Shown here piece by piece: positions 5,137 to 38,400 of a stretch of 64,000 nt of DNA. The position numbers and the translations under genes were made by a program. Positions within the stretch are counted from its first letter, which is position 1; each line of letters starts with the position of its first letter. Source of the stretch: Epithemia pelagica (lineage: Eukaryota > Protista > Bacillariophyta); assembly GCA_946965045.2 (NCBI GenBank), contig OX337232.1, positions 3,286,001 to 3,350,000 on the forward strand, given 5' to 3'. The notes below the pieces were generated by a model, which saw nothing but the letters and a program-made list of their open reading frames with translations, was not told the origin of the DNA and did no database searches.

Positions 5137-8088
5137 ATGGTGGAGCCCACGACAACAGCATCCGAGGCCCAGCTCGTAGACTCCTTTTGTCATGCATTTG
5201 ACGATCCTTGCAAGAATTTGAAGGAAATTCTCGGCATGCTAGGAGAAGAACAACAACAAGAAGAAGAAGGACCGAGCAAGACAATTGCCACCACACGACA
5301 TGGCACAACGGGTCAGTATGCGCTCCATTGGATATTGCAGTCCTCTCCTCGCAATGTGGAATTGGTTTCCAGTTGGGAGGGATATCAAATTGTGCGTCGA
5401 CTCATCAACTTGTATCCGGCAGTCTTGTTGCAACACGATGCGAAGACTGGCAAATTGCCCATTCATTTGGCCCTCGAGATTCGCTTTGTCCATCCACGCA
5501 AACGAGACCAGTGTTTGGTCACCTTGATGCTTCGCACGGAACCTCGCTGTGCCAGCATTCCAATCTCAACCACCACGACGACGACAACAACAAACAATAA
5601 CAACCACGTGGGACAGTTGGCGCTTCATGTGGCATGTCGAGATCGCAAATGTCCCACCTCCACCCTCATGACGCTCGCCACTCGGTATCCTTACGCCATT
5701 CTTACCCCGGATGAGTCTCCCCACGCAAGTCTTCCCATTCATCTTTTATTGGAATGCAATCCTCCGCGCCTCGATGTGGTTCGACTGGTGACGCATTTTC
5801 ATGGCTTGCAACCCACTTGTGTGTCCATTCCCACTCGGGACACGAAACAGCTCCCCTTGCACCTCGTTTGTGAAGAGGCCATTCGTCGTAGCAAGGCGTG
5901 GAGCACTGCGTATCAGGAACAAGTGCTGCGACTCTTGTTGCGACTGCATCCGGCCGCAATGACGCAACCGGACCATCATGGAAATTTACCAGTCCATATC
6001 GCGGCCCGGCACAACCCCAAGCTGGCGGCCCTCTTGCTGTCGTCGTCGTCGTCATGGAACACCCGGGACGAGGACTGTTGGCGCAACCGGCAGGGACAAT
6101 TTCCCTTGCACATTGCGTGCCAACCACAGGCTTTACGCTACCATCCTCATCATCACTCTGCTGCGAGTCATAGTCATGTGGATGGCATTGTGGCCCTGAT
6201 CCAAGCTCGACCGAATCACGCGGCACGGACCGAACCCTCCGGTCAGACCCTGCCGCTGCATTGGGCCTGTCAACACCGACTGGTGGGTGTCATTCCCGCC
6301 TTGCTCGAGGCATTTCCCGCAGGTCTCCACCAACCTGACCAGGACGGCACTACACCCATTCAGTACGCGTCTCGAACCACTCATCGGAATCGGGCCGTCT
6401 TGACCCTCCTCCGGCAAGCAGCAGCAGGAGGAGGTCCTTTGCAACAACAGCAAAAGCAACAACAAGAACAACCAAGCCCAGCAGAATCAGCAACAGCCGA
6501 CTTGGAACAAGGACCAACTGTCATGGAAGAAGAAGAAGACGAGGGATTCGATGCATCGTTCGAAACTACTACGGACGCCACATGCACCATGCGCCGGCAC
6601 GAACCCACCGTCGTGTCACCGGACGGGTGTAGTAGCTCCAGCTCCAGTCATTGCAGTAGCAACAACAGTCGTGACGAGTTGCCCCACACGGCCCGAGATT
6701 CTGCAGCTGGTAGTCCAATCGACGACCAATCTCCGACAACAACAACAACACGAACACCAATGATGACAACTCGACCTCCTTCCGTAGTGTTGGACAAGAA
6801 CCAGAAGAATCTCCATAAAAATGAAACCGACCAACAAGAATCCTTGCGTCAACCCATTGGTGGCATGAAAACAGAGATTGAGAGCCACAAGGACAAAATG
6901 GTTTGTGACGAAAAAGAGGCATTCGACAAGACTCTCGCGGAGACCAAGGAATTGCGACAGCAATTGAGCACACTCCAAAACGAGGCCGAAACCACAAAGA
7001 ACAAGGCTCTGGAAGAAAAACAAGCATTGCAGCAGCAAGTTTGGAAGTTTCAGCTGGAAGCAAAATCCATCCAGAACAAAGCGCTCGACGAAACACACGC
7101 ATTGCAGCGGCAAGTGTGTAAACTTCAACAGGAAGCGGAACGTATCAAGAGCAAGGCTCAATGTGAAAAAGACGACTTGCTGGAACGTGTTTGTACACTA
7201 CGGAATGAGGCAGATAAGAGTAACAAGGCTATGAAACAGGCTAGGGAGGAAACACAAGTTTTAAAGCAAGCGTTGAAGGTTGCCCAAGAGAAAAATGCAG
7301 CCTTGCAAGTGCTTTTGCAAACACAGATTGCTGGACCACGTCGAGTCCGTGGCCCACCACTGACACTCTTGGCACCCAGACCACCACCCGTACCATCTCA
7401 TAAACAACAAGAACAAGAACCACCACCACCACAACACGAGGAAGGTGAACCACCTCTCAAAGAGCTCGTCTCTGCCGCCACAAGATCCTTGGTCTCGTCG
7501 TCGTCGTCCAAGAAGAAGGACCCACCAGGCGTTTCACTCTGCGATTCCAAACGCCCGGCGACGCAGGAGCAGCAGCAGCATGGAGGAGGAAAAGAGGAGG
7601 AGAACACGAGTCCCGAACTTATAGAAAGGGGTATCCACAGCGACAAACCCAATGTCGACAGTGTACAACCTCTGGAACGACAGGATCGAAAGAGACGACA
7701 AGAACAAGAGAATGGCCCACAACACCACCAACCAGACCAGGAGGACAAGAACGGCGACATTAGCACCCACCAAGATCAAGACGATTCTGGGACCACAGCA
7801 AGTCGCCCCACCAAGAAACGGGCCACGGAGGCAACAAGGATGGCGGCAAACAATCCCGCTACAACGACAACGACAGCAATCCGTGCGTCCACGTTTCCAT
7901 CCTCCTCTCCTCGACAATCGCGGAATCTTTCCGCGTCCTTGGCACAACCACCACCACTTTTGTCGGGACAGTCTCCAGTTCCGACCATGGCAGTACCTGT
8001 TCCAGTTCCCTTCTTTGTCCCACCTCCACCACAACTCCTCCACCATATGATGATGCTCGCATCACAGCAACAGCCGTGGACTGGATAG
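5137..8088 (+). CDS. Ankyrin-repeat-like protein with coiled coil and low-complexity C-terminus
   Basis: Repeated G-x-LPLH/LPIH/LALH-x-AC motifs (GKLPIHLAL, GQLALHVAC, GNLPVHIAA, GQFPLHIAC, GTTPIQYA), then an E/K/Q-rich heptad region and Q/P/T runs; single long ORF. Confidence 0.75.
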   Translation: MVEPTTTASEAQLVDSFCHAFDDPCKNLKEILGMLGEEQQQEEEGPSKTIATTRHGTTGQYALHWILQSSPRNVELVSSWEGYQIVRRLINLYPAVLLQHDAKTGKLPIHLALEIRFVHPRKRDQCLVTLMLRTEPRCASIPISTTTTTTTTNNNNHVGQLALHVACRDRKCPTSTLMTLATRYPYAILTPDESPHASLPIHLLLECNPPRLDVVRLVTHFHGLQPTCVSIPTRDTKQLPLHLVCEEAIRRSKAWSTAYQEQVLRLLLRLHPAAMTQPDHHGNLPVHIAARHNPKLAALLLSSSSSWNTRDEDCWRNRQGQFPLHIACQPQALRYHPHHHSAASHSHVDGIVALIQARPNHAARTEPSGQTLPLHWACQHRLVGVIPALLEAFPAGLHQPDQDGTTPIQYASRTTHRNRAVLTLLRQAAAGGGPLQQQQKQQQEQPSPAESATADLEQGPTVMEEEEDEGFDASFETTTDATCTMRRHEPTVVSPDGCSSSSSSHCSSNNSRDELPHTARDSAAGSPIDDQSPTTTTTRTPMMTTRPPSVVLDKNQKNLHKNETDQQESLRQPIGGMKTEIESHKDKMVCDEKEAFDKTLAETKELRQQLSTLQNEAETTKNKALEEKQALQQQVWKFQLEAKSIQNKALDETHALQRQVCKLQQEAERIKSKAQCEKDDLLERVCTLRNEADKSNKAMKQAREETQVLKQALKVAQEKNAALQVLLQTQIAGPRRVRGPPLTLLAPRPPPVPSHKQQEQEPPPPQHEEGEPPLKELVSAATRSLVSSSSSKKKDPPGVSLCDSKRPATQEQQQHGGGKEEENTSPELIERGIHSDKPNVDSVQPLERQDRKRRQEQENGPQHHQPDQEDKNGDISTHQDQDDSGTTASRPTKKRATEATRMAANNPATTTTTAIRASTFPSSSPRQSRNLSASLAQPPPLLSGQSPVPTMAVPVPVPFFVPPPPQLLHHMMMLASQQQPWTG

Positions 8089-8603: not shown

Positions 8604-9728
8604 ATGGTGTTGCTGTTTGCTTCTAGAATCGGTGGTCGTCTCGAACGCTCCCGTGGGAAGATTGCTGCCTGTTTGTCGCAGAATCAGTCGGCATCACACT
8701 TCTTTGGTTCCCATGGCGCTGCTTCGGGTCATCGGTCCATGACGTCCTTGTCACGTCGTGCTGCCGCACTCTCAGTTGCCGGATGCAATCCCTTGCACTT
8801 GTTTCAACAAGAATGTCACGCACGAGGATTGTGCAATGAGCAGGGAGAACGCATGCCCAATGTCGATTGGAGAATTGTTCTGGCATCCTCTACCGAATCC
8901 AACCGGGTACGTGTCTAGCTAGATATCGTCACTACCAACCAGTGTGTGCGTCTGGTTCGGATCTGCAACCGTTTCCGGAATGGAACTGTCCGAGTTTACC
9001 AAATGTGTGTGAGTTTCTCCCCATACTTTAAGAGTTTCTCATTGGGAGTTTACTCTGTGTTGTTTCCTTCCTTTTCTTTTCCTCTCTCTTTTGGTTTCGT
9101 TATTACTACAATAGCCTCCTAATCTCCGTACCGTGGGTCTCTGTCGAGTTTCCTCACAGGGATTGGACTTGGTGGTCAAAAAGACGTCCGCGCAATCTAC
9201 CTTGTTGGAATCTCCCGTCTCGATATTGCATTCGCAAGGTAAATTTTTGCCGGGTCAATCGGCCGAACAATGGCGCTTTGAATCCATGGCAGGTGTCATG
9301 CCTTTGGACTGGACCCCCAGCAAATGGTCCAATCTGTACCTCTCTTTACCTTGGTGAGTTTTTTGGGATCGCATCGATTGTTACAGCAACAACAACAACA
9401 AGCGCAAGCCGAAACCAACAAATCCTCCCAAGAAGAACCGGCCGTGGTGTCGGCCAATCGCGTGGCCATGGGTGCCAACAAGAGTCATTTGGTGGAATTG
9501 ATGCAAACGGCACGCATGGAATTGGAATCCTCCCCGAAGCAAATTCCCGAAACGGAATTGCTTCAGTGTGTCCAACCCGTACGAATCCTTCCCGAACGAG
9601 TCGAATGCATGTTGGCCAGTCCCGATGCCAGTATCATGTGGGATCGATGGGAATGGTTGCGACGAACCACCAAACAAGGAGAAGCAGAGGAGGAATGGTG
9701 CCATCCACAACAATTGGTGCCGCATTAG
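8604..9728 (+). CDS. Probable intron-containing pyridoxamine-5'-phosphate-oxidase-like (FMN split-barrel) protein; exon structure approximate
   Basis: Consecutive exon-like segments NPLHLFQQ...PNVDWRIVLASST, GLDLVVKK...PVSILHSQG...EQWRFE and ILPERVECML...WDRWEW follow the order of PNPO motifs (DP..LF..W; NP.VSLLF..QVRIEG; L.PE.VEFW..HDR). GT..AG gaps near 8907-8942 and 9009-9159. Confidence 0.4.
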
Positions 9729-13905: not shown

Positions 13906-15301
13906 TCATTCGGGTCCTGTACCTGGCGGATGACTACTGTGATGAAATTGTGATCCTCGACTTTCGGTATGGGTCGATGGTGCAGGACTTGAACCATGTC
14001 TACGGTTCCGGTGTGCATGTCGTTCAATCCAATGATTCACCAAAGGAACATGTTTCAAAAAGGCAAAACATTCGCCATCTTCCGTCAAGCGAAAGAAGCG
14101 TTTGTGCAAATAGATGTACGCATTGAAGAGACCCTAGACGAATAAGCAAGAATAATACATGAGAGGATAAAAATGTCACGGTCAGAGCAATCGTTCCACA
14201 CATCTTCCGTACCTGTATTGGAGAAAGGGCCTGGGCAAGCACAGCAAAGGGGAACAAGACATTGCTCCTTCTGTCGGGGTCATCCGTGGTCTCCTCTAAA
14301 AATTTGAGAATCACAAATGGAAGTACCGAGATAAAATAGCCAGCAATATATAAGAGGCCTTGAACGGACGTTTCTCGCGTCCGACGCAACCGACTTCGTT
14401 CGTGTCGATGAGGATTGGACGAAGGCGCTGTTGTTGTCCTTGTCGTCAAAGCGGTCGTTGTTGCTGGTGGCGGATTGGAGGCTTCATTTTGGTTGTTGGT
14501 AGAAGTAATAGTAGGCTGCGACGGCGTGGGCGTAAAGATGGTATACTTTCGCAATTGCAATTCCGTATGTCGTACCTTGAGAATAATCAACACCATGGAG
14601 ATTGCAATCAGGAGAAAAATGATATACAAGGAATTCAGGGCGACTCCACTGCTCAACCGGTTGTAATTGTCCCCCCGTTGACAGGGCACAGTACTGTCTG
14701 GTCGGCTGCAATAGGGCGGGTAATCACTGAACCAACAGAAACCAGGAAGAATCCGGAGTGGATTGTACAAATCATCCACCACCGCATAGATCCCAGTCGC
14801 AAGGGGATGGGCCAAGCTAATGAAATGAGCCCAAGGTTCGATATAGCGAGCAATGACGCGATCTTTCCATTCGTAGCGAACCAACAACAAGAAGTAGAGA
14901 GACAGAAACCCGGTATACCACCATGCCCCGAAACTGACATTGTTGAAAAAGCCGGCGACGGCGCAAGTCGTAAAGGTGCCTCGATTGAAATGGGAAAAAG
15001 AGTCTGCTTGCGGCGACGGAACGACCCATGGTCCCAAAACAATCAATGCCAGCGAAGCAACAAGGTCAAAAATACTGATCATGAACATGAGGCGATGGAA
15101 CATGCTTGTTTCCAGCAACTTTTCGTGTCGACTTGTGCGACTAAACAGGAACATCAAAATGGAACAAGATCCCACCACCGACAAGGCTGCCGATGGAAAT
15201 GGTAATAACTCCAACACAATTACTTGGGTTTGAGTATACATGCCCGTATCTCCTTCTCCTTGATAAACTTGCGAAGAAAGTCGGCGAACTTCATTGTTCA
15301 T
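13906..15301 (-). CDS. 7TM GPCR-like protein (cAMP-receptor/Git3-like); exons 15301-14213 and 14133-13906
   Basis: Seven hydrophobic segments, RGTFTTCAVAGFF before TM3, GFCWFSDYPPYC...C.RG loop. A 79-bp GT-AG intron (14212-14134) joins PIQ|GLFNAYIYL. Paralogue at 19918-21348. Confidence 0.75.
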
Positions 15302-16299
15302 GGTGCGTCACCTATGTCTACAGAAATTCTGGTGCAATGAACGCATTTTGGGGTCTTCTTTCGTTGGTCCCCTCCCCATTCTTCTCCATTTGGGGGCGCT
15401 CTGCTTATTTCCGAGCGATTTATGAGCGACTCGATGACGTTTCTCTTGAGTCTGAATGGATCTTTCTGTTGAGAAGATGGATGAGACGAACTCAAGTGTA
15501 ATCGTCCATGAACTCTGCATCATAGAGCAACGAGAACGATGAAAGTATCAGGAATTACAAAACCTTGCGACGATGGCTGCACCGAAACCATGGAACTCCA
15601 GCCTCGAAACAAGCCTTGTTGGTTTTTGGGAATCACTTGCACGAACCGTACATGTCTTTTTCAGCTTGTCATGACGGTACCTTCGACGCCACAAGTTGAG
15701 CGACTTGATTGATGACACCGTCTCACTTCCATTAGTTTCGTTGGTTGAATGTTGGTCTCGTGAAAGTGCCGAGCGTGCAAATATATTTCTCCTATCGAAA
15801 CAAAACATTCTCCTTGTTCCCCAGTCACCTACTCAAGAAAATTACAAGACGCTTGCAAAGGGCACTTGCTTATTATCCGTTCGACCAATTTCCGTTGAGA
15901 GTGTTTTGAAGACATGTGAGCATATTGTTTGTTATGCGGAGAAAAAGCGGCAGATCTTCTTCACACTCGCGGTACAAACCGTGATCAATTCCCTTTTCAA
16001 TGCTCCTATTGAAGGAGACAATCTTGATTCAACACACTCATTGCGGAAAGGAAACGCGCCTCAATGGCATTGCTCATAACCTCGTCCGAATCGATGATGG
16101 GGAGAAGTTGCTTCCCCGTTCTAAACACCTTTGTTCAATATAATACCTTCGAAAAAAGAATGGCTGTGTTCCCATTGAAGAATGGACCATCGATGTTGCA
16201 TGCTTTGATGCACAAGCTCACATTCGGGGTAATCCATAAGTGGAGAAGTATGCTACAGGACTGTGGAGCATAAAAAAAGCAACACGATACAAAATCATG

Positions 16300-22332: not shown

Positions 22333-22671
22333 AGTGTGGAGTAGAGGAGTAGTGAGTAGTACAACAATACTCGTAATATACCGCTGTCTTCTGACTTCTG
22401 TCTGCTTGTATGTCTGCGTTCTTTCTTCTTTCCGTCGTCAGTCGTCACTTTCGTCACTGGGCTTAAGGCTTAACGCCAATCGCCTTTAGGGCCTGTTGGC
22501 ACTTTTCGAGCACCTAATTAGACATAGTCGAGGTGCAAAGATCCTCATTTCGTGCACCTCGCCCTTAACCGGAAATTAGAAGAGCTTTTAGTAAGAGTTA
22601 AGGCGTGTCATTTTTTTCTCATTATCTCATTTCATTCATTGATCGTACCAAAGGATCTCCTTACCTACATC

Positions 22672-23238
22672 ATGTCGTCTTCTCCTGATCAAGTTGCATC
22701 CTCTACATCCAATCCAGAAGCCATCCCTGTCTTTTCTAGTGCCCCCGAGTTCTACAACAAGACTCGCGGTGAATCTGAAGCTGTGGCACTGATCATGTCA
22801 TCCGACGACGTGTGCATTGTGGACAACAATGGAGTTGTATCTCAGCAGCTAGACCGTGTTTACAAAACACGGTTCGTGAAGCAGGAGTCCTGTTTCGACA
22901 ATGATGATCAGGCTGTTTTCGATGCTGTTTCGAAGCATCTCGGACCCAAGCACGAAGGACGTCCTGTTTTCTGGCAGCAAGTTTGTTGCGACTGCAAGCA
23001 AGATCCTTGTTTGATTTTTCAGCATGGACAATTTATCTATTCGATCCACTCGCACCTGGAACGCCGCAACAAGTCGAACAGAGAAATCCGGTACTAGTTG
23101 TACCGTCGCATGTCATGCACTCTTCATGGCGAGCTTGGCCGTGGCAATCGTCGCCCTCTACCAGCCTGCTTGGTCGACTTCATTCGTGACATTTTCCCCA
23201 ATGAAGAGGGTGAAGCCTATGTTGGTTATCGCGCTTAG
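22672..23238 (+). pseudogene. piggyBac accessory gene: P2X7 cytoplasmic-ballast-like (P2RX7_C/KolX-like) Cys-rich protein, in-frame TAG at 23095-23097
   Basis: Reading through the TAG gives CCDCKQDPC...NREIRY*LYRRMSCTLHGELGRGNRRPLPACLVDFIRDIFPNEEGEAYVGYRA, matching the N..R..AYR......G.LG.G.R..LP.C....IR..FP....Y.GF pattern. Confidence 0.6.
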
Positions 23239-23276
23239 AATAGGAGTAGATATAAAAGAATCTTACTAGTACTACG

Positions 23277-26200
23277 TTACATTTCCACTACCTGTCCTCC
23301 CTCGTTACGATCATTTTCATTATGTTGTTCGTTTGTTGTGTCTTCATTCTCAACTTCCTCATTGTCCTCCACTTGTGAATCCTCGTCTTCATCCTCATTC
23401 CGTGCTCTTTTCCTCCTCCCTCGTCCAACTTCCTGTAGACCATGTTTCAATCGAACATCACAAATAACTGGATGAGCTTTGTTGATGGTATAGTCATACC
23501 GTCCACTGTTGCTCGTTTGGAAAACCTGTTGCCCGACTTGTGAATGTAGGATTTCGAAACATGTCAGTCCCTTGAAACTTGGGTGATCATGCATTTTCCA
23601 ACCCTTGGTCACTCTGTCTTTGGAATGAGCCAAATGGGCAACAAGGCCACATTTGGCGCATTTGCCAACATTCGTATACATCCCCCCCCATTGGCAATTT
23701 GCCCTTCATCCACCGATATTCGACCATGCACACAACACACCGGGCTCTACCTGTCATTTCGACTAGAACATGGCCGTCGACACACTGTGGATTGTCAGGT
23801 ATGGATGCTGTTGACTGCTCCATGTCATCACTTGTACCCTCGTATTGTAGTAGACACTGCGCGATAATGGTATAGAAGCCGTGTCTTGAAAGTCGCTTGC
23901 GTCTGCCTCTGACAGTTTGCTCATGACAAGAGAGATTCCATGCAATATATGAGTTCAAGAGCATGCAATCCACGACAGCCAGGTATATTTTCTCATACCA
24001 TTTTTTGAAATGCCCTTTCGTACCAAAGGATCCTCCTTGGATCCTCATTTGGTCTCCTTTGTCCACGGATCCCATGTTTTGTTGGTACACTATCAAAGGA
24101 TTTGGACAATTCAACTCTTTCTTCCTCGATCCAACTTGGCGCTTTACCACCCCGTGGCCAGTGTCCTCCAAACTAGAGACGAATGAGACAACCTTACTGT
24201 CAATCCACTGCCCACATAGGATTCCATTTACTGAGTCATGGATCAGTTTGAAAGTGCCACGGTTGTCCTTTGTTTTCGACAAGTTCATTAGGGACTTGTC
24301 CCATCCGAGTCGATTGGAACAAACCGTTCCAGTAGAGAAACAATGGAACCGTTCTCGAAGAATGACCGCAAGTTGTGGGGCCATATACCGGTTATCCATA
24401 CTGATATGGTGCATACCTTGTGTTTCTTTATGAAGGCCCAAACCATAGCAAGCATTCAAAACAGCTTTCATTGTAGTCGGAAAGCGATGAATACTAGGGC
24501 GGATATACGAGTTGGTTGCGTTAGCACCTTGATAGACATCAAGATGCAATATGGCATAACTGGAGGAAGATGCCATAATGAAAAAGTCCACACCCGAAAT
24601 TTCTGTGGCTTGTCTTTATTGAACTGGCGAACCGGGCACATTCGCGAGCGACAACCCACTCCCCCCTCGTCAAAAGCCATGTCTTTGGGTACGAAGAATG
24701 TCTTCCTCGATGTCTCGTTGAGTTGGTTCAATAGAGTACGAAACTGGTAGCATTTGTCCCCTCCGCCAGCAGCCGCAACCTTGTTCTCGGGGTGAAATGC
24801 CCCACGTATCTGCCGGAAGCGATTCAATGTCATGTGCTTCACGGCAAAACCCCGACTATCTTCAATCTCCACTGGAGGGACATCCGGTCCTAAATTGTAG
24901 GTGACGTTGTTTGTCTGGAAGTAAGCAGTGTACCCCCCACCATCAACCGGGTTTAGAGACATTGTAAGCTAGATGCCCAGGAACCGGTACATCTCTTGGA
25001 TTGTTACGTCTTTCCATCTTTGTGAATGGTAATAACCATTCCGAGACGCGTGCCGCAACTTCAAGTGTGAATGGTAGTACGCATTTGTGGACGAGGTAAG
25101 ATTCGAGACCATCTGATTGGTCATCCCACCACATCTTTGGAAACACTCAAAGGGCGTAGAAAACGTTTGCCAAATTCCTGGTCGTAATCCTTCCCCCCCA
25201 AGGTACATTGATTTCTGGCGTTGCTCTGTACCAACCCAGTTGTACCCAACTGTACTCTCGCGTTCCTGGTACTTGAATTCTAGACTGCGTAAAACTTCCA
25301 GTAGCGTCTTCTGGTTATTGTCGTCTTCCGCTGAACCATTGTCATTTGCCTGCTGTTCATTCGCCCGTTGTTCGTTTTCGGCCGCTAAGTCTTTCACAAC
25401 AACAGAGTCGTCGTCGTCAGAAGAGACACTTGCCTCGTCCAACGGATTGCCCAGCCTATCATCAACATCCGAATGAACAGATGCCTCTTCGTCGTCAGAC
25501 AAATCCGAGAGAATGTCGCCCTCGTTCGCTGCCAGGGATCTCCGCGTCACTATTCGGTTGGTTGGAGCCTCATTGGTTTGTGTGTTGTGTCCAGCGACCA
25601 TCGGTGAGTCGTCTGGTGGCATCGTACGAAGTATTGCCCGGCCTTGGGCCCGAAGGGTGTCCTCACTATTCGATTGGTTTCCCCCCACCATGTTTCCACG
25701 ACCATGTGGTGCGGTAGGACGAGCACCAGTATTCTCGGTCAATGGGCTGTTGACAGGAACTTGGTTGCCAACTCGAGTAGGGACCGCAGGAGCATTGTTT
25801 TGTTGTTGCTGAGGCTGTGTACCTCGGCTGTTAATGTAAGTCTTGATCAATTCCTTGTTTGTCTGACTGGAAGTGAACGACACAACTGACCATTCGATTG
25901 GAATATCGTCGCCATGTTGCCACTCAATGAGAAAGGTGTAATTCGTTCTCTTGGCAGGACAAGCAACAATTTGACCATTCAGCATGTATGGATTTGAGTC
26001 AGACTGTTGTGGAAACTTTGCAAGGAAGGCATCGTGAAAACCGTCTTTCAACCAAAACGTGTGTGGTGCTCGTAGTGGTTGTTTCGCGAAGGAGAATCTG
26101 TTTCTTGTTTGCTTCGGTGGTCGGTTCAAAGTCGTTAGTTGTTGTGCAGGAGGAGGACGGAGCTGTTGAGGAGGTTGTTGTTGTTGTTGTTGTTGCTGAG

Positions 26201-26327
26201 GAGGCGGTTGTGTAGGAGGGCAAGGTTCTTGTGGTGGAGGTGACTGCAAGGTTGGGGGGTTTGGATCTTGCGTAACGGCAATTGGGCCTTCTTTTTCAGA
26301 AGCATCTTCAGTGGCGTTGCCCGACAT
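23277..26327 (-). pseudogene. piggyBac transposase (DDD plus C-terminal Cys-rich domain), disrupted
   Basis: FSTPFECF, EMYRFLGI*LTMS, MTLNRFRQIR, AFDEG, SMDNRY, WIDSKVV, YQQNMGSVDKGDQ, KKWY, then C..C...C..C...H. TAG at 24969-24971, frameshift ~24590 (GTGTG), frameshift in C-run ~23680. Confidence 0.85.
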
Positions 26328-27055
26328 TGGACTATTAGGAACCCAATGGCTCGATCCTTCGAATACTTGTTGACTGGATTCTATACGTCGTGGTACTTCT
26401 AGTTCTTTTCATCAACCTCAAACAAGTGGCATCTGTCAGGGTATCAGATGACTGCCAAAAAATGAGCAAAACTGCCGATTCTTCTATCGAAAATTTGACG
26501 ATGATACAGTCATAATTGAACTATAGTGTCTTAAAATAAAATTTTCAAAATTTCACCAGCTTCCGTTTGGAAGTGTTCATTGTCCTCAATACAAGGTAGG
26601 AGAAGAGATATGATTGATCAAATGAAATGGAGGTGCGTATGTGAGCCTCATTTTGGAATTGAGGTACACATGTGATACTCGGTGTTGATTGGCGTTAAGG
26701 TCGACAATAAGCGTAAGGAGCACTTTGGATCCCATCCATTCCGACAAAACGTGCTTTTCGAGCCAGCCCGCCACACACGTGCACACACACGACCTGCCTG
26801 CGACAATAAATACCCCCATTTTTGCGACATAACTTCATTACCACTTTGGATTTTCTAATTAAATCTGTTTCTCAGAGAATGTCACACATTAGTTCCGAAT
26901 TCTTATACGGCACTTCTCACTCGGAAGCAATCATCCGTTGCTTGGACGATACCATGCCAATGGTGAAGGATGATTCTTGTTACTTCGTTTCCCTTTGTCC
27001 ATATACCCAAACGACTGCTTTGTCTCCCATTGATTGACCATAGAAACAAGGCATC

Positions 27056-28702
27056 ATGTTTGAAAAGGAAGGGCCGGTTTATGTTCCGCTATTCAACAAT
27101 GTCTTTCGTGTGGGAACTTTTGTGCATGTCAAATTGAGTGATCAAGATCAACACTCAACCACCGTATGCCAGCTGAACAAACATACTGATGGCAATGTCA
27201 TGCTGAAATTGTTCTACCCGTTATTCCCCCCAAAGAATCTAAAATGCCATCCCTCCATTCCGAAACATGATTTCGATCCCCTCGAAGAAGAAACTGGCTC
27301 TCGTCAAATCGAACTCTACGAATCATGGGATTCGATTCACCGGTACGAAGCTCAAGCACAAGATATTTCCATCAGATATCCTGCATTTTGTTTCACACCG
27401 AAGCAACTGGAATCTCCGTTGAACAGATGGGCGGAAGGCATCAAAAACGTGTACATAGTACGGTTCAAGCAAGTAGGGGGAACAAGTTAGTGCCAATTGA
27501 CGAGTTGAAATTTACCTGCTTCCCCATGGATCAAGTGAAACCAAACGAACAACTGATTGTTCCTCCACGCTGTTTCCACAAAAACACTTGGCACGGCCTG
27601 TTCCTACTACGCAAGGCTCTTATCAAGATTTTGAACAAGCGGGGCGGGCATGCAGAGAAACGTGACTTCCAGACAGTCACCATCGGTAACATCCCCTCTG
27701 AAACATTTAATTACTTGCATGTCCTTCTCAATTCTCACCTGAAATGTGTCTCCTGTCATTATATCGACGGATCCGAGAGCTATCAAGACTTAGATGCCAA
27801 ACTAACACGCCGTAAGATTCGGATGAGCTGTCAGAATGGCATCCTACGCTTCGAAACACAAGAAGAGTTGGACATTGTGCGTAATTTCCTAGGTTTTGCC
27901 GCAGTCTATGGTTCGAGTGAAGTTCGGCCAACTCTTAAAGATGGTGCTGCTGGTGTTACCCTCAAGCGAGGGCATTTCCTGACTGTGATCCGAGGCAGTA
28001 AAGAGAAGCCTGAGTTTAAGCGCCGATGCCTTGATCAACGCATCGACATTGTGTTCTCGCCTTTTCAAGTCAAGGTTTCCGTGAACTTTGAACGGTACCG
28101 TTACGACAAGAGTCGTGGGGGTAAATTCAAGGTTGATCCTCCCACGGACCATCTTGAAAGTGTGCTCCTAGCCAAGCCATTCCCATTCGATGACAAGAAA
28201 TTCCGTCCCTTTCCCGTATCAGCTGATGCACTCGTTGCTCCACAAGTCACGTCACCTGACTCGTCCACTGATCCATCGACAGCAGATAGCTCAGACCACA
28301 CCGAGATACGATACAGAGATACTTCACCTCGATCCATGGCCCCCCCCAAATTGTTTGGTATCTCTTGGTGACAAATATGAGCACGAAGGGACCACTTTCC
28401 AAGTCGCTGTCTATCTCCCACCGGCCGACAAGAAACACTACGTCCTTCGTGACAAATATGATGACACTATTTTCACGATGAATGATCCTGAGAGGTATGA
28501 CCGAGTTGGAGGAATCGAGGGTATGGAGTACGTTGGGACACTACTTCCTTCAAAGTCTTGGTCCATTGGATGTATTGTTATGAGCGGTGTTCGATTCAAG
28601 TCGGACGTGGAGGAAGGGAGTCAGGATATGGATTTCCATACGGATATTCCTCTCATTGCCAGTCTTGTGGAAGCAAACAATGACGCTCAAGCAACTAATT
28701 AG
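27056..28702 (+). CDS. Partner gene of the RAG1/Transib-like element (~548 aa if two homopolymer frameshifts are corrected); unknown function, N-terminus weakly BAH-like
   Basis: ORFs 27056-27490, 27325-28371 and 28190-28702 join by +1 G in the G5 run at 27476-27480 and -1 C in the C8 run at 28340-28347. Lies tail-to-tail with the transposase, 50 bp between stops. Confidence 0.55.
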
Positions 28703-28752
28703 TGTAATCAGTGAAACAAATCTCATTATATATTGAATACTAACTCTCCTAT

Positions 28753-31700
28753 CTACTCTGATTCGTACTCTTCCTCAGTAGTTGTTGAGTCTTCCGAGTC
28801 TACATCGAGATCCTGTGAATCATCCAACCGAGGATCATACAGAATCTCAACTCCCACATCCCAGTCGAACTCGTATTCCTTAACCCCTTCCTCATCTTCA
28901 TCTTCGTCATCCTTGGATTCGTCATTGCCTGTATTGTTGTGTCCTTCCTCATCTTCATCTTCGTCATCCTTGGATATGTCATTGGCTTTTTTGTTGTGTC
29001 GAACAAGCTGCCCGAATTCGATTGTTCCGCCATTGTCTCTCACCCACGTTTTGAACTTCTCTTCTTCTTCCGGAGTCCTCGCATCCATTTCGGCTCGCAT
29101 GGTTTCCAGGTCGTAACCTAGCATGAAAACCATGCGGCGTTGGATCCATCTTGCCATGGGACGTAGCCTTGAGCGTGCCCCTTTTCCTCTATTCACTGCT
29201 CCTCCGCGCTGAGTTCTATTGAAATAGAAGCTCTTAAAAGCGGAGTTGAACGCTTCCCAGCCTTGCTGGGAATGGTTCGTGAGGTTGCGCCAGTGTAGGA
29301 GATATTCCCCGATATGCCCACTACCAATGTAGTGGGCATAATTTGTGATCCCATCGTCACCATACAACTCTATCCAGTCGCGATAGAAGAGATCAGCATG
29401 CTTCTGGTAGTCAAATATTTGCTCGTTTGTCATGGGTTCCCGAATTCGCAGCAGTTGGAACGAGGCAGAGTAGTGTTCCATTGCCCTCTTCCATAAGAAG
29501 ATGTCATCCTCATCTACGATGCACTTGTCCACGAGTTTCTCGATGTCGACAATCAAACGTCGGATCTGTACATTGCTCATCTGAACCACCCCAATAGTCT
29601 TCGTGGTTTCCTCGAATGGAATCTGAAACTGGAACGCGAGATTTCCTGTTCCAAGTATTTCGGTATTGATGCAATGCTCGATTCCTCGAAGGAAGGACTT
29701 GCATTTTTTCTCGACAGACGAACGGTTGGATCGTTGAATCCAAGGAAGTAGATTGTTTTTGGCATTCATAAGCCCGGTCCGGAAGCACATGGTCAAAATC
29801 TTCTGCCCCATTCGCATCTCCATGTGGAGAATGCAGGGAATGGAATCCATGACCATAACAAGTGCAGTGCTGACCGTACCTTCCCCGAACAATCGGACGC
29901 AATCATGGCAATCAACATATTGCCACTCCGAAATCAGTTGGCGTCGTAAACGATCCTGTCGTTCCAACACATTGCCATCTACGGACAAATTACGTAAACC
30001 CAGATCCTTGTTCAGCCAAGAAGAGTACCTCTTCTGTAAAGTGTTTGACGCCTGAGCCACATCGAAGTGAATTGAAGAGACTGTTTTCAACTGAATCTCA
30101 TCGACCGGCATTCTAGGGTCCATTGTCTTGTTCATTGCAATTTTTGACTTAGCCCATATTTCTTCAATCTGGTCCTTGATCTGGGGTATGTCCTTCTCGA
30201 ACTTTTTCATTTCGTCCTTGCGGATTTGCACATAGTCGTCGGTGCAAATAGGAAAGTGACGACACATCCATCCATCTTCTGTAGATGCGTAGTCCATGTG
30301 ATCACACCATTTGCAGTCATCGGGTGATTCCAGGCCCTTTGTTAAGTTATCACTTGAAATGTGACACTTAGCACATGGATATTTCGCAACTTTAACCGCT
30401 CCTCCTTTGTCTGAAACTTTGAAATCACAGGACATATCGGCATTGAGTGGATTGTACACTTGTTTTATTCCGAACGCTTTCGGGAGTACAGTCTCGGCTG
30501 CTTCCTTGTTTTCTTTCAACATTCTAGAGAATAATCCGCGTACAGTGTTTTTCTTTTCCCGACCAATGACACAACAGGTTGGGACACAAGCTGCCTGGGA
30601 CCGTTGAAGTGGGTTGGAGATATCATTGTACTTGACCCCACCCAGTGTATGGTCCAATGATCTAGTAAGACTGGCTCCATCCATACACGAGGCCACTGTA
30701 TGTTCCCTTTCTTTCGCCTCACCTTCCAACGCATTATTGGATCTCAGAACACCTTTCATACTGTCGGCCCCCCGGAAAATGAATCCTTCCGAACCGTCTT
30801 TCGTATTGCGAATGGTATGGAAGGGAACTATCGTGTCAGCAAAGCGTTCTATTTCTTGTTGGGCTTTCTTCATGGCCGCGGAACTCGGGATCATTGTATG
30901 GGCTCCCTTCCTCCCGTCGGACTCGCACTTCCGCAAAATCTCAAGACCTGACAAACTCAGAACACCACCGGTCGTATCCATTTCCCGAAGAATACGGAAA
31001 GGTGAGAAACAAGTTTGCCTGAGATAGTTGGAAACAGCCTTAACCATTATGTCACGAACTTGCGCTCCATGCAAGTTGTCATTCATAAGCATATTGGTTA
31101 GCATTCTGAAAAACTTGTCGGACCTTTGGCTACCAACTTGATGGTTCTTCACGGAAGATTTAATGACTTCCTTGATGTGTCGGATAATCATTTCAGCATT
31201 TTCTTCCTTGGAACAGGTAGAGGGAAGAGAAGCCATCCCATCTGGGCCAGATTGTTCTGTCTTTTTCTGGAGATAGTATATACGATCCAGTCTCGACTTG
31301 TTTTTCGCCCGCTGTTCGGAAAGACGCCGCTTCAGAGTTGCATTTCTTTGTCCTTCTTTGGATAGCTTCTTTTTAAGGGACTTGACTTGCAACAACAGTC
31401 CATTAACCAGAGAAACAGTGTACTGCTTCTTCTCTTCTTCTTGTTCTTCGTTTGAAGGTGTGGTTGTTTCCGGGGGTGCGTCTGATTGATCAAGGATCTG
31501 TGGAATCGTTAGACCGCGATTGATATCCACAGGAGGGTCGTTTCTACTACGGGGAATTACAGTCTTATCTATTGTGTCTTCGAAGCCATCGTCTTCAGGT
31601 ATTCGGTCTGACTCAACCCCGTCGTCATCTGGTGGTGGAATGAGTGTCTGGCTGGAGGGAGCATCACTGGTTCCGGCAGGAGGGGGTTTCTTCTGACTAC

Positions 31701-32646
31701 TGACAAATTCTTGGTCTTCATAAGGATTGGGAGGATGCTTCATGGAAGGAGGGGGGACATTCGCCTCTTCAGATTGAGCCAGTGTGAGATTTGGTTCATT
31801 GGTGGGGACTGTCAACGAAATGGACTGTTGTGAAGGGGGTTTGCTGGATTCATCATATTTGTTGTCTTGAAGTGAGTGACATTCTGGGCCTTGATTCGTT
31901 GGAGAAGGTTCGGTGGAGAGATCGTGTGTTGATTGTTTTGATTCTGCTTCCAATAAATCAGGATTTGTAAGAGAACCAATCTCTTGTTGGGCGTCCTTGT
32001 CGGCTTTGGCTTTTTTCTGTCGCTGTTGTTCGGCAAGTTTCTTGAGTCTCCTTTTTTTCTCATCAATCATTCGGTCTGTTGGGTAAATACCATTCTTGTG
32101 CTCGGCAACACATCCGAAAAGACCAGAGAACCTATTGACCTTGAGTTGAGGTTGGGCACGTTCCTTGTTATCCGCATATTCGCAATTTAGACAGAAGAAA
32201 AAACCACCACGATATCGGGCCTCTCGTTCGAGACCGAAAACGGAACACGGCTTCTTGTAGTGGTGCTTGAATTGCTTACGAATCTTGGCAATCCTTTCCC
32301 TTTCGACATAACTGTTGGATATCGTCGTGCCTTTGTTCAGACGGGTGGCTCTAGTTTGAAGATTGGGAGATGGCGGTAAGTCTTCAGCAATTCTGGACGA
32401 TCGCCGAAGAGGGTGTGAAGGGGCGGGAGGTTCCTTGGGAGGGACAAGACGCTCTTTGGGAGGTGCTGGAGGATCTTCGGGAGGGGGTGGAGGTTCCTTG
32501 CAAGGGACTGGAGGTTCCTTGGGAGGTGGAGGGTCTTTAGCAATTCGGGAGGAGCGGCGAAGAGGAGGTGGAGGGGTGTCGGGTTCTTTTGGAGTGGTTG
32601 CTGCTTCTTTCCCTGGTTTCGTCGTGGTTTGAGATCGAGTTATCAT
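28753..32646 (-). CDS. RAG1-core/Transib-like DDE transposase, 1297 aa, uninterrupted
   Basis: In RAG1 order: SCMDGA (D, 30679-81), NADMS (D, 30436-38), YPCAKCH (CxxC), PCILHMEMR (LH), GITNYAHYIGSGH (cf. RAG1 KITNYFHKTLAH), SQQGWEAFN (E, 29254-56; cf. ASEGNESGN). N-terminus has Pro-rich repeats and a Cys/His cluster. Confidence 0.75.
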   Translation of the reverse strand: MITRSQTTTKPGKEAATTPKEPDTPPPPLRRSSRIAKDPPPPKEPPVPCKEPPPPPEDPPAPPKERLVPPKEPPAPSHPLRRSSRIAEDLPPSPNLQTRATRLNKGTTISNSYVERERIAKIRKQFKHHYKKPCSVFGLEREARYRGGFFFCLNCEYADNKERAQPQLKVNRFSGLFGCVAEHKNGIYPTDRMIDEKKRRLKKLAEQQRQKKAKADKDAQQEIGSLTNPDLLEAESKQSTHDLSTEPSPTNQGPECHSLQDNKYDESSKPPSQQSISLTVPTNEPNLTLAQSEEANVPPPSMKHPPNPYEDQEFVSSQKKPPPAGTSDAPSSQTLIPPPDDDGVESDRIPEDDGFEDTIDKTVIPRSRNDPPVDINRGLTIPQILDQSDAPPETTTPSNEEQEEEKKQYTVSLVNGLLLQVKSLKKKLSKEGQRNATLKRRLSEQRAKNKSRLDRIYYLQKKTEQSGPDGMASLPSTCSKEENAEMIIRHIKEVIKSSVKNHQVGSQRSDKFFRMLTNMLMNDNLHGAQVRDIMVKAVSNYLRQTCFSPFRILREMDTTGGVLSLSGLEILRKCESDGRKGAHTMIPSSAAMKKAQQEIERFADTIVPFHTIRNTKDGSEGFIFRGADSMKGVLRSNNALEGEAKEREHTVASCMDGASLTRSLDHTLGGVKYNDISNPLQRSQAACVPTCCVIGREKKNTVRGLFSRMLKENKEAAETVLPKAFGIKQVYNPLNADMSCDFKVSDKGGAVKVAKYPCAKCHISSDNLTKGLESPDDCKWCDHMDYASTEDGWMCRHFPICTDDYVQIRKDEMKKFEKDIPQIKDQIEEIWAKSKIAMNKTMDPRMPVDEIQLKTVSSIHFDVAQASNTLQKRYSSWLNKDLGLRNLSVDGNVLERQDRLRRQLISEWQYVDCHDCVRLFGEGTVSTALVMVMDSIPCILHMEMRMGQKILTMCFRTGLMNAKNNLLPWIQRSNRSSVEKKCKSFLRGIEHCINTEILGTGNLAFQFQIPFEETTKTIGVVQMSNVQIRRLIVDIEKLVDKCIVDEDDIFLWKRAMEHYSASFQLLRIREPMTNEQIFDYQKHADLFYRDWIELYGDDGITNYAHYIGSGHIGEYLLHWRNLTNHSQQGWEAFNSAFKSFYFNRTQRGGAVNRGKGARSRLRPMARWIQRRMVFMLGYDLETMRAEMDARTPEEEEKFKTWVRDNGGTIEFGQLVRHNKKANDISKDDEDEDEEGHNNTGNDESKDDEDEDEEGVKEYEFDWDVGVEILYDPRLDDSQDLDVDSEDSTTTEEEYESE

Positions 32647-34126
32647 GGCTCTGTCAACGCAATCAAACCGTGAGGCCCGTTATGATACAGAGAGAGACGA
32701 TTGATTGGATGGATGTGTCAATCGGGTCATTACGAAATCAAGAGACGTCTTGTAAAAGATGAGAGAGGCCCAATCTCATCGAGTCGAAGGGAGAGTTTGG
32801 AATTGTCGATTAACATGCGACTACTGCGTAATACTATATTCGTAGACGTAGAATTATTATTATTGTGAGTATGCCATCTCGGACGGAAGCCGAGCGTGAC
32901 ATGGGTTTTTTTCTCATAATTTGGAGGCACTTTCAGTTGGACTTACGGGCATGAAAGACAATATTGTAACTCTGATGCAAGGTCGGGGATCCAATTTGGA
33001 TACATAGAAGAAAGTTTTTGCATACTTACATCAGAGTTACATACATGATATGGACTCCGTTTTGGGCTTCCAATGGAGAAGAGATGCTCAAGAGTGAAAT
33101 TTGATGCCAAACGACCGTATTATTTAACCAAAAACTCTTTCCACTATTTGGCTTATAGTGAGTTTTTGGGTTTCTGAGATGGTCGCGACGGCATGAAAGT
33201 GGTGCATGCGTGCGACTTGGGATACGAAGTGCTCCTTACGGGATAATAGTTAGCACTAACAAAAGCTAAAAGCTGCCCTTTCTACTATTTGTTCCATTCT
33301 GAATTATTCGGGACTCGATACTCGATATGCTGGAACCGGGACTCCAAAACGGATGATTCCGAAAACACGTACATCAGTTAACAACAGGAACACGCGAAAC
33401 TATGTCGGCTATGACCTCACGCGCCCTATGCTAGCAGACAAGGCAGCATTTTAGCTTAGTACTAGCTAAACAGCTCTAGTCCTTGTCGTTTTGGCGATTG
33501 TCTCTTTTTCAAAAACCCGGGGCAATAAAAACGGTGCTCCCGGTATTAAGCCTCATGACCCACACATGATGAAATTTTTGTCTTGTAATGTCCTACTTAT
33601 CAATCATTAGCTAAGCCTGACGAATAATGTGGTGTACACTACATAACTTCTCAGTCTTGTGAGCCATCGGTAAATAAGGGCACTCCGACACCGATCTCAG
33701 ACCCCTCCTCGTAGCCATCCAAGCAAGAGATCCCTCGCAGCCAAAGATTGAGGACGAACAAACAGATGAGATGATTCAATAACTTAAACAAATTTAGATT
33801 CTCGCGATCATGATCATATGATTAGATCGTGTTGTGGGGGGAAGGTGAAACCTTCTCCACTCAGAGCCGGTGATCCAACACCAGCTAAGGGAACCGATCT
33901 GTTAGCCACGAGTGGATGAACCATGTCGAGACTCCTGTTTGTTCCCCTGAGCTCCCCCAACGCAATCAGGTAGCACCATGCAATCGCAAAGGGGGCAGGG
34001 GACAGCAGACTGAAACGGAACAAACCCATAAACCAACAATCAAGAAGAGAGAACGCTTTGCCACGTCGGCTTTCTCTCAACTTGTCGATACCAAAACCCC
34101 CTCCACCGAGAATCTCGACTGGGCGA

Positions 34127-35411
34127 TCACATGGACCAGGTATACCTCAGGAATGGTCCCACAAGCAAGTTCAAGTCGACCCATGTCTTGAGCCAGGCAG
34201 ACTGCGCGATTTATCCATCGTCTTATCTTTATTCCACTGCTGGTCTCATCGCAACATGGCAAAAGGTGTGAGCGTTCAATGTGCTCTCCTTTGAACTGCC
34301 CCCACAACCCAACCACGATACAGTTTCGTTGCCTGTAAAGATCCATGTATTTCACAAGCGCATTCAAGTCCAGCAGCAAACCCTCCGGGCCTCGCAACGA
34401 CAAAACGTATGACGTAGCAAAGAACGTGCCCGCAAGAACGAGAAAGAACGAGTCATGTTCTTCTCGGTTCTCCAGAATCTCCTCCTCGATAGAACCCAAC
34501 AAAGCTTGCATTAACTCGCTGGTCACTGCCTGGTCAGGGCGCCAATCTTGGCCCATTCGGCGTCGACATCCTTCGACAACTCTGGAGAACCACAACGAAC
34601 CGCTCTCATCCTGGCCCATTCTAGAGAAGGCCTTTCCATTGTTGTCTGTTAGCACCAAAGGATGGCCGTTCACTAGCGTAGAAGCCGTTGCTCTCACGTG
34701 ATTCGAATAAGTAGAACGAAATTTGCGTATCGTATCAAACTGCTTCCTGTCTCGATGATATTTTCCTTGATCCAAAGACGCGTCCAGCATAAGGAAGGCA
34801 ACTTGATAGCCACAATGGTCATAATTTGGGAACGGGCCTGCACTTCGAAAGGGGCCAAATGGAATCCCGACTTTCTTTGATTTCTCTATCATCAATTTTG
34901 CATTCTTCATGTTTTGAGTTACCGTGCTCGTAGCTCTGCTCCAAAAGGCGTCCAAGTTCATTCGCCGTATGCAAGTGAGCAGGTATCGATCTTTTAAATT
35001 TTCCGGATCCGGCTCCTCTTCTCGCAACTTCCCGAACACGCACAAATCGCACTCGAAAGGAGTGACCAGGTGGTCGCCTGCTCGCGCTTGGTTAAAATCC
35101 TCCCGACGGTCTCTTGTACGAATCCTCCAAGATTCGGCCACCAAACGAGCCTGGTCTGATTCTTCCACCAGAGTGTTCCGAGACGCAACATAAAACCGGT
35201 CATCGTCGCTCAAAGAATAACACCCGGGACACCATGCGCTCTGACATGGAGCGCATTTTCCAACACTGTACACAAAATTTCCGCAGAAGATCCCGTCCAC
35301 CCACGGGATCCTCTTTCCACATTTTGCACAGTTTCCGATCCATAGCGAACATCTTCGGTGTTCCTCGGAGTTGCCATGGCTGCGACCTGATAAAAGGAAA
35401 AGCAAGACCAA
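34127..35411 (-). pseudogene. Tyrosine recombinase, copy 1, with ~0.3-kb internal deletion
   Basis: Near-identical to the copy 2 YR up to CLAQDMG, then jumps to the last codons, losing RSFRRG, NRW and the catalytic Y region. Confidence 0.8.
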
Positions 35412-38400
35412 TAATTAGAGGTTCGTAATTTCCTTCGGGCCAAAACGAAGTACCGGCAGGGATTTCCATCACAAGATCGCATGCTTTATGAAGTTGTTTG
35501 AAGCACTTGGGAGTAAGTAGGCGCTGGCACATGAAGACGTGCATGGAAGACTGGCGCTTATGACGGGCTTTTCGAAGTTCTTCTAGTGCCACGTCTGCTC
35601 CTCCTGGAGGAGGAGCCCACACGAAGTGTCCTGGCCGAAGGATGGGCAGGGGCAAATCGTTGTGCTCAGACGGAAGCGTCCATCCCCTGATGTCGTGGCC
35701 GGTGGTAAACCAGTCCATGGGAGTCAGGAGCTCCGTCTTTGCACCCAGCCAAGATCGAACTCATTCGAAAAGAGTGTCCGACATTTGGATGGGAGTTTTG
35801 TGAAGGGGGATGTAGGAAAGCATGGGCGACCCCGCCATCACCCCTTCATTGAGTTGGCCTCTCGAAATCCCGTCAACCCCAACAGCGATCATCCGTTTGC
35901 CCGAGACGTGTGAAATGTGAAGTCGCAGGGAATGCCTCATTTCTAATCGCCTCAAACGGATTACGAGGTCTAGGAGTTTTGGGCTGGATGAGGACCCTTT
36001 ATAGAAACATCTTTCCACCGTGGAATTATCGGTGAAGAAGAATACCTCTGTTGAATCAAGCTGGCCCGTGGCCGCTTCTTCTTCAAGTGACTCGACACAG
36101 TTGGTGAATTCCTTCCAGTTGGAAGATTCTTCCACAACAATATTCCTGCCCCAGACGCCCACTCTGTAGGACAATTTCTTTTGTGGCAACTGGAAGGCTG
36201 CACCGAATCCGCATCCTGATGCGTCTCCACATCCAAACAAAGCGACATAGATGGAAGACGATCTGACTTGAACTTTGGGAGGCTCTTCTCCCTCAAGCAT
36301 TGCTGCCAATACTTTGACATCCGACTTGAGACGCGGAACCGCTTTCACTAACTTTGGTGGGTTTTTCCGGGAGAGTCTTTGCTTCACCATTCATTTCCTG
36401 CGCAGAGGGTTCACTTTCCTCATCCACGTCGAGAAAACCGCATAGCGTATTGACCTCGGCATCCGAGAGTTTTTCATGCAACTGCAATATCCATTCTCTT
36501 GCTGAAAGCTTCCATCCATCACCGTTCCGACCCGGCCGCCAGATGTTCATTGTCAAGTAAAAGCCCTTCAAAAACGGCATCATGGAGCTAAAAGTCAAAG
36601 CTTGGTGTACAAAGAATCCGACATCTCCTTGCATTTGCTTGTGATCGAAAGTCGGAGTGTCACTTTCCGCAAACGCCTCCACATATTTCTTCAACAAGTC
36701 CTTGCCTTTTTCCCACTTCTTTTGCGTGAGTGTTTTCGACACTGCTGAAGCCGAGATGTGATGCACGCTACCTGCCCAGGCTCCTGGAGTTTTAGAGGGT
36801 GGACGACGCTTCTGCGGGGCATCCTGAATACCGAGATATTGCAATCGAGACCCCAGACGTCTCGCGACTTGTCATGTATGTTCAGCAGACGATCCCACGG
36901 TTCGAAGGTCGTCCATATATGTTACGACGTCACCGGCGATGTTGTTGAGCTTGGAATTCCACTTCATCACCCATGGAAGTGTGGGGGTATAATCTGCAGA
37001 ACCTGGTATGTTGAAACGTACAGAATCAAACCCACATGGACTTGTTAGTTCTGACGGGGGTCCTTTTGCAACTTCTTCCGCAATGTAGTAGTGTTGCGCG
37101 GCGTGGAAAGGGCTGGGCAACATGCCCATAAACAACCGATTCCAGCGAACAACGCGGGGTTTGGAAGCAAGTGATGTAACCAAATGTTCCCGTAACGGTC
37201 CAAAATCAACACCAGCGAAGGGACGTAGACGAATGTCCATTGGAAAATTGAGAAACATTTCGCCCTAGTCCATGTCACCACAGTAGGAATCACACGTCAA
37301 AAAGCGCAATGCAGACTCAGAAGATTGTAGCCAAAAATTGGGGGCCCACAATGATGCGTTGAGGCCACAACTTGTGCCATTGTAAACCATTCTAATATCA
37401 CATTCCCCTTTGGGGACCGCAAAGTAGTCAGACATGCTCTCAATGGGTGCGTCAACATCGAAGTTGCCACGACTTAGGACGGTCGAAAGTTTGCCGCCAA
37501 CTTGTGTAAGCAAATCGTCCGACGGAGGTCGTTGCTTCCGGTGGTATGAGGGGAGTGCTCCTGAAACATGGATAGGTGTCCCAAACCAAGCGTCAGTTTG
37601 TTGGTCGAGACCATTCCAGCGCCAGAAAACGAGAGAAGAGCCGGCGTCCCAATCCCACCACGTGCTGGCCAAGAGTTGGGAAAGAACTTGGCAACCAGGG
37701 GCGCGCACAACGGGAGCGGATTGTAACGAAAAATCAGTCTTCCCCCCCCACCCCACCCCCCCCCCCCCCCCTAGAGTGTCGGCCCAGACACCAAAGAAGG
37801 CCATGCCATGCCAAAACGTAGACGTAAATAGCGAACAAAACTGCGATACAAGCGTCGACGCCACCAGCGGAGGGCAAGCAAGCGAAACCCAGCAAGAGCC
37901 CTATCCGAGATCCAAGGGAAAAGACCACGAATTTGACCGTTTCAAATCCAAAAAGGAGTGACCGCATCATCCGATTTAACGGCAATATCCGAAATTTTGG
38001 TGTCATCTTACCATGCAACGTGAGGCAAAAAGGCGGACACAGAAGCTATGGGCGTGCCCAACACCCCATCTCGCGTACATTCCGACAAGGCCGATAGCCA
38101 CCGACCGCGCTTGGCTGAACGCAGAGGCGACGGTGGGCCACCGTGTTTGGTACCAGCGGTGCTGAGATGATGGATCAGGACCGGCTCGAGGAAGGGGAGA
38201 GCAGTGTTCAAAACTTGTCCCGGGATCTTGATGGGCGTAAAACGAGGGGAAAGTACATTTTGCACCCACCTATCAAACGACTCATCATTCTGCAATATCC
38301 ACAAGGGGAGGTCGAAAGCAGCACCCAATTCCAAGGGAGTAAGCTTTCTCGTGCCGCATCCATTCTTATAGAAGCGAGTTTGAAACTTCACCGGCTTCTC

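Follow-up and report, generated by a model that had tools for sequence, protein, structure and literature searches.

Which transposon superfamily can account for a two-gene element of the diatom Epithemia pelagica whose transposase is predicted to fold like RAG1, and whose ends, as well as its target-site duplication (TSD), differ from those of the RAG1-related transposons? The question is raised by a stretch of 64,000 nucleotides (GenBank assembly GCA_946965045.2, contig OX337232.1, positions 3,286,001–3,350,000 of the forward strand), hereafter called the window, within which all positions are numbered from its first letter. The transposon occupies 6,529 bp of the window (26712–33240) and consists of two convergent genes, encoding a transposase and a partner protein, between 23-nt inverted ends. 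An earlier examination of the letters alone (the sequence-only reading) had proposed an undescribed lineage between the CACTA/Mirage/Chapaev (CMC) and Transib/RAG families. It is very likely that the element is a multi-copy, recently active cut-and-paste DNA transposon of a diatom and represents a new lineage of the CACTA/Mirage/Chapaev/Transib (CMCT) clade, nearest to Transib/RAG1 and Chapaev; the placement, which is to this neighbourhood rather than to an exact branch, comes from fold, language-model features and family descriptions.

Copies, ends and target-site duplication

We compared the window copy with other copies of the element. The closest of these, a sister copy (L006), was 99.2% identical to it over exactly 26712–33240, with 47 substitutions in 6.5 kb, and had unrelated flanks. 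Because the homology stops exactly at both ends, the ends are defined to the base and the last movement was recent. A second copy (L001) was 90% identical, and its homology likewise ended at the element ends. The cluster of transposase proteins at 90% identity or more contained seven members, which were found on different contigs of one ENA assembly. The sequence-only reading had called the element possibly still mobile, and the copies indicate a multi-copy family that has moved recently. They also bear on the idea that the transposase open reading frame (ORF) is a domesticated, single-copy syntenic host gene. That idea is already refuted, since the element occurs between inverted repeats at several unrelated loci. 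A further sequence (L010) represents the same locus in the ENA assembly; it carried the exact transposase protein and differed from the window by a single base in 19.9 kb, and is therefore not independent evidence. The differing base, at window position 37755, falls within a long run of C, which points to the length of homopolymers as the weak point of these assemblies.

Ends were placed for nine copies (the window copy, L001 and L003–L009), which gave 18 termini. In the window, the partner-proximal terminal inverted repeat (TIR) is located at 26712–26734 (+ strand), begins CGTAAGGAGCAC and starts exactly where the homology to L006 and L001 ends. The transposase-proximal TIR, located by an inverted-repeat search and by the L006 comparison, is at 33218–33240 (− strand). 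The two repeats pair at 21 of 23 positions; with three mismatches allowed, a search of the window gave no further site, and 100 shuffles gave none at all. All 18 termini began with C followed by A or G, and the next bases were mostly W-T-A-R-G-R-G-C-A; the family end consensus begins C-R-W-T-A-R-G-R-G-C-A. CA was found at 10 of the 18 ends and CG at the remainder, including both ends of the window's subfamily (CG..CG) and the CGCG of L004. None of the 18 termini started with CAC. The inverted repeats are 22–30 bp long. In them, a terminal box that is conserved is separated by a short variable stretch from a second box that is specific to the subfamily. Over these 22–30 bp, one end of a copy aligned to its other end with no offset, and no 12/23-type asymmetry was seen in the first 30 bp.

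In each of the nine copies, the base immediately outside the left end was the same as that immediately outside the right end (G, T, A, C, T, G, A, T and C), an agreement expected by chance at about 1 in 4^9, or about 4e-6. In the window, the duplicated base is the G at 26711 on the left and the G at 33241 on the right, the latter position resting on the L006 comparison together with the nine-copy end reading. No duplication longer than 1 bp, including one of 5 bp, was consistent across the nine copies. The collection of other genomic copies, which the sequence-only reading had proposed as a check, thus gave exact ends and a 1-bp TSD, and several of its statements held: the 23-bp TIRs, which are the sole pair in the window and have counterparts in all nine copies, the ends other than CAC, and the invisibility of a 5-bp TSD. 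Its suggestion of a 3-bp ATA duplication, obtained when both ends are extended by 2 nt, did not survive, since the homology with L006 is bounded at 26712 and 33240. A literature search for a 1-bp TSD found no report.

Some irregularities were observed around individual copies. In L001, the 10-mer AGTGGAAATG occurs at 9378–9387 and 15891–15900, i.e., 21 bp upstream of one of the ends and immediately behind the opposite one, and the end adjoining it is atypical (CATAGGCAGCAC). A long TSD was considered and rejected, as nothing similar was present in any other copy; the repeat is possibly a local target repeat or marks a rearranged end. The flanks of L006 contain a 9-bp inverted repeat around the insertion point (TAGCCCGTA at 7627–7635 and TACGGGCTA at 14187–14195, in L006 numbering), and the target of this copy may have been another small element of palindromic form. 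Contigs from three public DNA runs of one study were also compared with the window; no public run recorded as RNA was found. The terminal ~57 bp (26712–26768) were 3–4 times deeper than the interior in these contigs, some of which diverged at 26768, and this divergence suggests shorter, possibly non-autonomous derivatives that share the ends. One public-run contig (X1–X3 loose ends) joined a different flank directly to 26713, with T in place of the first C; it represents a further insertion of the subfamily, one in which the first base is changed.

Transposase gene and predicted fold

The transposase gene (28753–32646, − strand) is an uninterrupted ORF of 1297 aa. A word-indexed protein search gave 26 homologues, none of which had a Pfam label for the core, and a further search of this kind with the core alignment at E ≤ 10 returned family members only and no Pfam-labelled distant relatives. 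An exhaustive profile search recovered 3,949 clusters at E ≤ 0.001, of which 618 reached E ≤ 1e-30. Another diatom, Seminavis robusta, contributes one family member, a protein that is uncharacterised. The family is large, with thousands of protein clusters, mostly unannotated and marine, yet it is invisible to Pfam-based annotation, and for this reason diatom annotations list these proteins as hypothetical.

The sequence-only reading had described an uninterrupted 1297-aa ORF with D, D, CxxC, LH, NYxH..H and E in the RAG1/Transib order, and every motif that it quoted was present. The proposed first catalytic Asp, D656 (SCMDG; codon 30679–30681, − strand), was invariant in the 26 homologues and is located on the first strand of the RNase H-like sheet, and the proposed second, D737 (NADMS; codon 30436–30438, − strand), was kept in at least 90% of the homologues. 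C758-x2-C761 (30364–30375, − strand) and H1105-x5-H1111 (NYAH..GSGH; 29314–29334, − strand) were invariant and are the counterparts of the ZnC2 and ZnH2 motifs of RAG1, respectively. The proposed catalytic Glu, E1131 (QQGWEAFN; codon 29254–29256, − strand), was also invariant and is located at a helix start. The LHME motif contains H941 and E943. C758 and C761 are at +21 and +24 from D737, and E1131 is found 20 residues after H1111. In RAG1, the second Asp is D708 and the CxxC cysteines are C727 and C730. The spacing from the second Asp to CxxC and from the second His to the Glu resembles that of RAG1.

Other conserved residues lie outside this set. The insertion domain carries a C-x2-C-x13-C-x-H cluster (C778/C781/C795/H797; 30256–30315), which has no counterpart in the list of RAG1 motifs and may be a second zinc site. 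An N-terminal Cys/His cluster (C134, C152, C155, C179 and H183; 32098–32247, − strand) was conserved across the family alignment and is probably a zinc-binding DNA-binding module. The N-terminal half also contains proline-rich repeats and a coiled coil. Near the N-terminus, a 21-bp repeat of about 5 units (32419–32532) encodes proline-rich heptads of the PPKEPP type. The repeat analysis further showed that the acidic C-terminal tail is encoded by two tandem 57-bp units (28886–29000). The public-run contigs skip one of these units, and the repeat number differs between copies or strains.

The structure of residues 520–1190 (29077–31089, − strand) was predicted using AlphaFold2, with a mean predicted local distance difference test (pLDDT) value of 81.7 and a predicted template modelling (pTM) score of 0.70, and the model has a core of the RAG1/Transib fold. 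In a Foldseek search against the PDB, the best 49 matches were all mouse and zebrafish RAG1, amphioxus RAG1-like protein (BbRAGL/BbRAG1L) and HzTransib, with E values from 2.5e-9 to 5e-3. The next match was Hermes (E 0.045), behind all 49; neither hAT nor the P element was the best structural match. An exhaustive alignment to 48,161 chains, performed independently of Foldseek, gave the same ranking. The fold found by these two comparisons and the motif layout agree with each other on the RAG1/Transib-like catalytic core proposed from the letters. Retroviral integrase cores aligned from model residue 129/130 to about 659, a span that places the first Asp of the integrases near D656 and their Glu near E1131 by arithmetic mapping, not by superposition.

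Partner gene

The partner gene (27056–28702, + strand) is arranged tail-to-tail with the transposase gene, as the sequence-only reading had noticed. In the window, it is present as three overlapping ORF pieces, which match positions 6–142, 145–435 and 448–558 of the partner hidden Markov model (HMM) in this order. Intact versions were 548–594 aa in length (548 aa in both L001 and L006), and the 18 homologues found were all unannotated. The ratios of nonsynonymous to synonymous substitution rates (Ka/Ks) between the window/L006 and L001 subfamilies were 0.10–0.11 for the transposase and 0.18 for the partner. These values indicate that both proteins have been kept functional by purifying selection.

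The AlphaFold2 model of the partner (pLDDT 77.4) matched BAH domains at residues 1–160 and small beta-barrels of the Tudor/KOW-like type at residues 430–545. Residues 170–380 gave no structural match, and no propeller match was obtained anywhere in the model. The partner is predicted from this model to have a BAH-like N-terminal domain, an unmatched middle and a small beta-barrel C-terminal domain, in agreement with the earlier impression that it is not kelch-like.

The partner could be a captured passenger with no role in transposition, which we regard as rather improbable. The window copy tolerates a broken partner gene, as expected of a passenger, and the role in transposition is our interpretation. 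However, the partner HMM found a convergent copy directly downstream of the transposase gene in nine of the nine diatom loci read, i.e., at the same position in every diatom copy read, with transposases only about 40% identical. A metagenomic member with a transposase of only 34% identity gave a weak partner match (E 9e-7), again at this place and in this orientation, and this trace and the partner Ka/Ks value also argue against a passenger.

Placement among the RAG1/Transib and CMC families

In a shape search of the ESM Atlas, unnamed eukaryotic, DUF1280, Transposase_21 and arthropod Transib clusters matched the transposase about equally, with template modelling (TM) scores of 0.50–0.55 (DUF1280, 0.52/0.60; Transposase_21, 0.50; Transib, 0.51). 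DUF1280, DUF1258 and Transposase_21 correspond to Chapaev, Mirage and CACTA, respectively, and DUF1280 has been grouped with RAG1 (Majorek et al. 2014). By language-model features, RAG1/Transib clusters scored 0.91–0.94 (165–188 shared features), DUF1280 clusters 0.93 (182–183 shared features) and Transposase_21 clusters 0.85 (122–127 shared features). RAG1/Transib and DUF1280 are thus the nearest by these features and Transposase_21 is farther, which is in line with the lineage between CMC and Transib/RAG that had been suggested from the sequence.

A divergent member of CMC (Chapaev, Mirage or CACTA) would explain the equal Atlas scores, in which DUF1280 and Transposase_21 are as good as Transib, and the resemblance to RAG1 would then be due to the missing CMC structures among the PDB matches. 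The C(2)C and H(3–4)H motifs are, moreover, common to all CMCT lineages, which have mostly CA..TG termini and 2–5 bp duplications (Kojima 2025). We nevertheless consider this explanation unlikely, though it deserves to be kept in mind. No match to Transposase_21, DUF1258 or DUF1280 was obtained at E ≤ 1 in the 26 members, and the Transposase_21 clusters were lower than the RAG1/Transib clusters by language-model features. The CAC(TA) termini and the 2–4 bp duplication of CMC elements (CACTA/EnSpm, Mirage and Chapaev) were not found in the nine copies, whose TSD is 1 bp. Chapaev is among the nearest clusters both by shape and by language-model features; the diatom elements differ from it in their ends and 1-bp TSD and in having a conserved second gene. 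The duplication of Chapaev in Repbase is 3–4 bp.

The best structural matches (RAG1, BbRAG1L and HzTransib) and the convergent two-gene layout, which is like that of ProtoRAG, would be expected if the element truly belonged to the Transib superfamily or were a RAG-like (RAGL) transposon. The multi-domain DDE core fold and the order D, D, CxxC, HxnH and E are shared with this group, and RAGL is known in another stramenopile. Such membership is nonetheless highly improbable. No match to the Pfam RAG1 domain and no sequence-detectable homology were found, and the diatom enzyme has H-x5-H instead of H-x4-H, a longer insertion domain and the C778/C781/C795/H797 cluster. The group has CAC ends, a 5-bp TSD and a partner with kelch and PHD domains, whereas the diatom family has C-A/G ends, a 1-bp TSD and a BAH-like partner. 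In the RAGL of Aureococcus anophagefferens, RAG1L and RAG2L genes can be recognised, the TIRs are asymmetric and of the CAC type, and the TSDs are 5 bp long (Tao et al. 2022). It too is a two-gene transposon of RAG1 type in a stramenopile alga, and an active one, but all of these features of the Aureococcus element are absent from the diatom family, and the two are clearly different things.

The CMCT clade (Kojima 2025) shares with the diatom family the C(2)C and H(n)H motifs and the CA..TG termini, the latter in several subfamilies of the diatom elements. For some CMCT lineages, e.g., ESTA, the similarity to RAG1 was detected only by HHpred (Kojima 2025), and that of the diatom family was likewise seen only by structure-aware methods. 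The differences from the clade are the TSD (2–5 bp in the clade, 1 bp here), the His spacing (3–4 in the clade, 5 here), the CG..CG ends of the window's subfamily and the BAH-like partner, which is not described for CMCT lineages in the literature examined. The element is outside Transib, RAGL and CMC as currently defined.

We tentatively interpret the family as an unnamed RAG1-fold lineage of superfamily level, active in diatoms, in which a chromatin reader (BAH plus a Tudor-like barrel) was recruited independently, much as RAG2, with its PHD finger, was recruited by the ancestor of RAG1, and which uses a one-nucleotide stagger undescribed in eukaryotic cut-and-paste superfamilies. Several points weigh against the main interpretation, that of a new CMCT lineage. 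Pfam scans of the transposase and its 26 members at E ≤ 1 gave no RAG1/Transib or other domain, only coiled-coil noise. The family profile matched neither a RAG1 nor a Transib chain among the sequences of the PDB, even at a threshold of E ≤ 10; the full-length profile gave coiled-coil matches only, and the core profile gave nothing relevant and no residue-level alignment to RAG1. The catalytic residues were accordingly assigned by motif order, spacing and secondary structure, not by residue-level superposition. No CMC-type transposase structure was among the PDB matches and the Atlas TM scores were equal, so that neither the PDB ranking nor shape alone can separate Transib from CMC. The BAH assignment comes from predicted structure, and a Pfam scan of the partner and all its members gave no domain and no BAH match. 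Finally, as a minor reservation, the end positions of L001, L003 and L009 were taken from an alignment with the family end motif and not from a perfect inverted repeat, and the mobility of the window copy is suggested by comparison of copies.

Proposed mechanism and significance

In the proposed mechanism, the transposase, with the catalytic residues D656, D737 and E1131 and a zinc site formed by C758/C761 and H1105/H1111, would bind the 23-bp inverted ends and excise the element by cut-and-paste with a RAG1-like active site. By analogy with RAG1 and Transib, excision would probably proceed by nicking followed by hairpin formation on the flanking DNA. Reinsertion by a one-nucleotide staggered attack would produce the 1-bp duplication. 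The partner would most likely be a chromatin-binding accessory subunit, parallel to RAG2 in role and unrelated to it as a protein.

In research on the origin of V(D)J recombination, it has long been asked how the ancestor of RAG1 came to be paired with a second subunit that reads chromatin. Nature would offer a second case of such a pairing in a distant transposase of RAG1 fold that is always accompanied by an unrelated protein resembling a chromatin reader. Since sister copies have both genes intact, the pairing can be tested directly. The 1-bp TSD and the non-CAC ends widen the known range of CACTA/Mirage/Chapaev/Transib elements, and target-capture geometry would need to explain them. Diatom genetics could also gain a tool in an active element of this type.

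State of the window copy

Compared with L006, the window partner gene has one base missing at the G run 27476–27480 and one extra C in the C8 run 28340–28347. Each of these homopolymer indels disrupts the frame of the partner. In the window copy the transposase is intact, as are the two ends, and the transposase differs from that of L006 by an in-frame 3-nt insertion. With its partner gene frameshifted twice, the window copy may rely on a sister copy to supply the partner protein. The public-run contigs contained only the in-frame version at both frameshift sites. They carry L006-type substitutions there and therefore do not tell a real frameshift from an assembly error.

Neighbouring features

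Only 18 bp separate the left end of the transposon from a piggyBac-type element (22474–26694). The ORF of the latter (24969–26327, − strand) gave a weak match to DDE_Tnp_1_7 at the C-terminus, and the ENA gene calls at the locus carry PF13843. On the other side of the transposon, a 444-aa ORF (34077–35411, − strand) has a Cys-rich N-terminus; it gave no Pfam match, and its exact sequence was absent from the protein collection.

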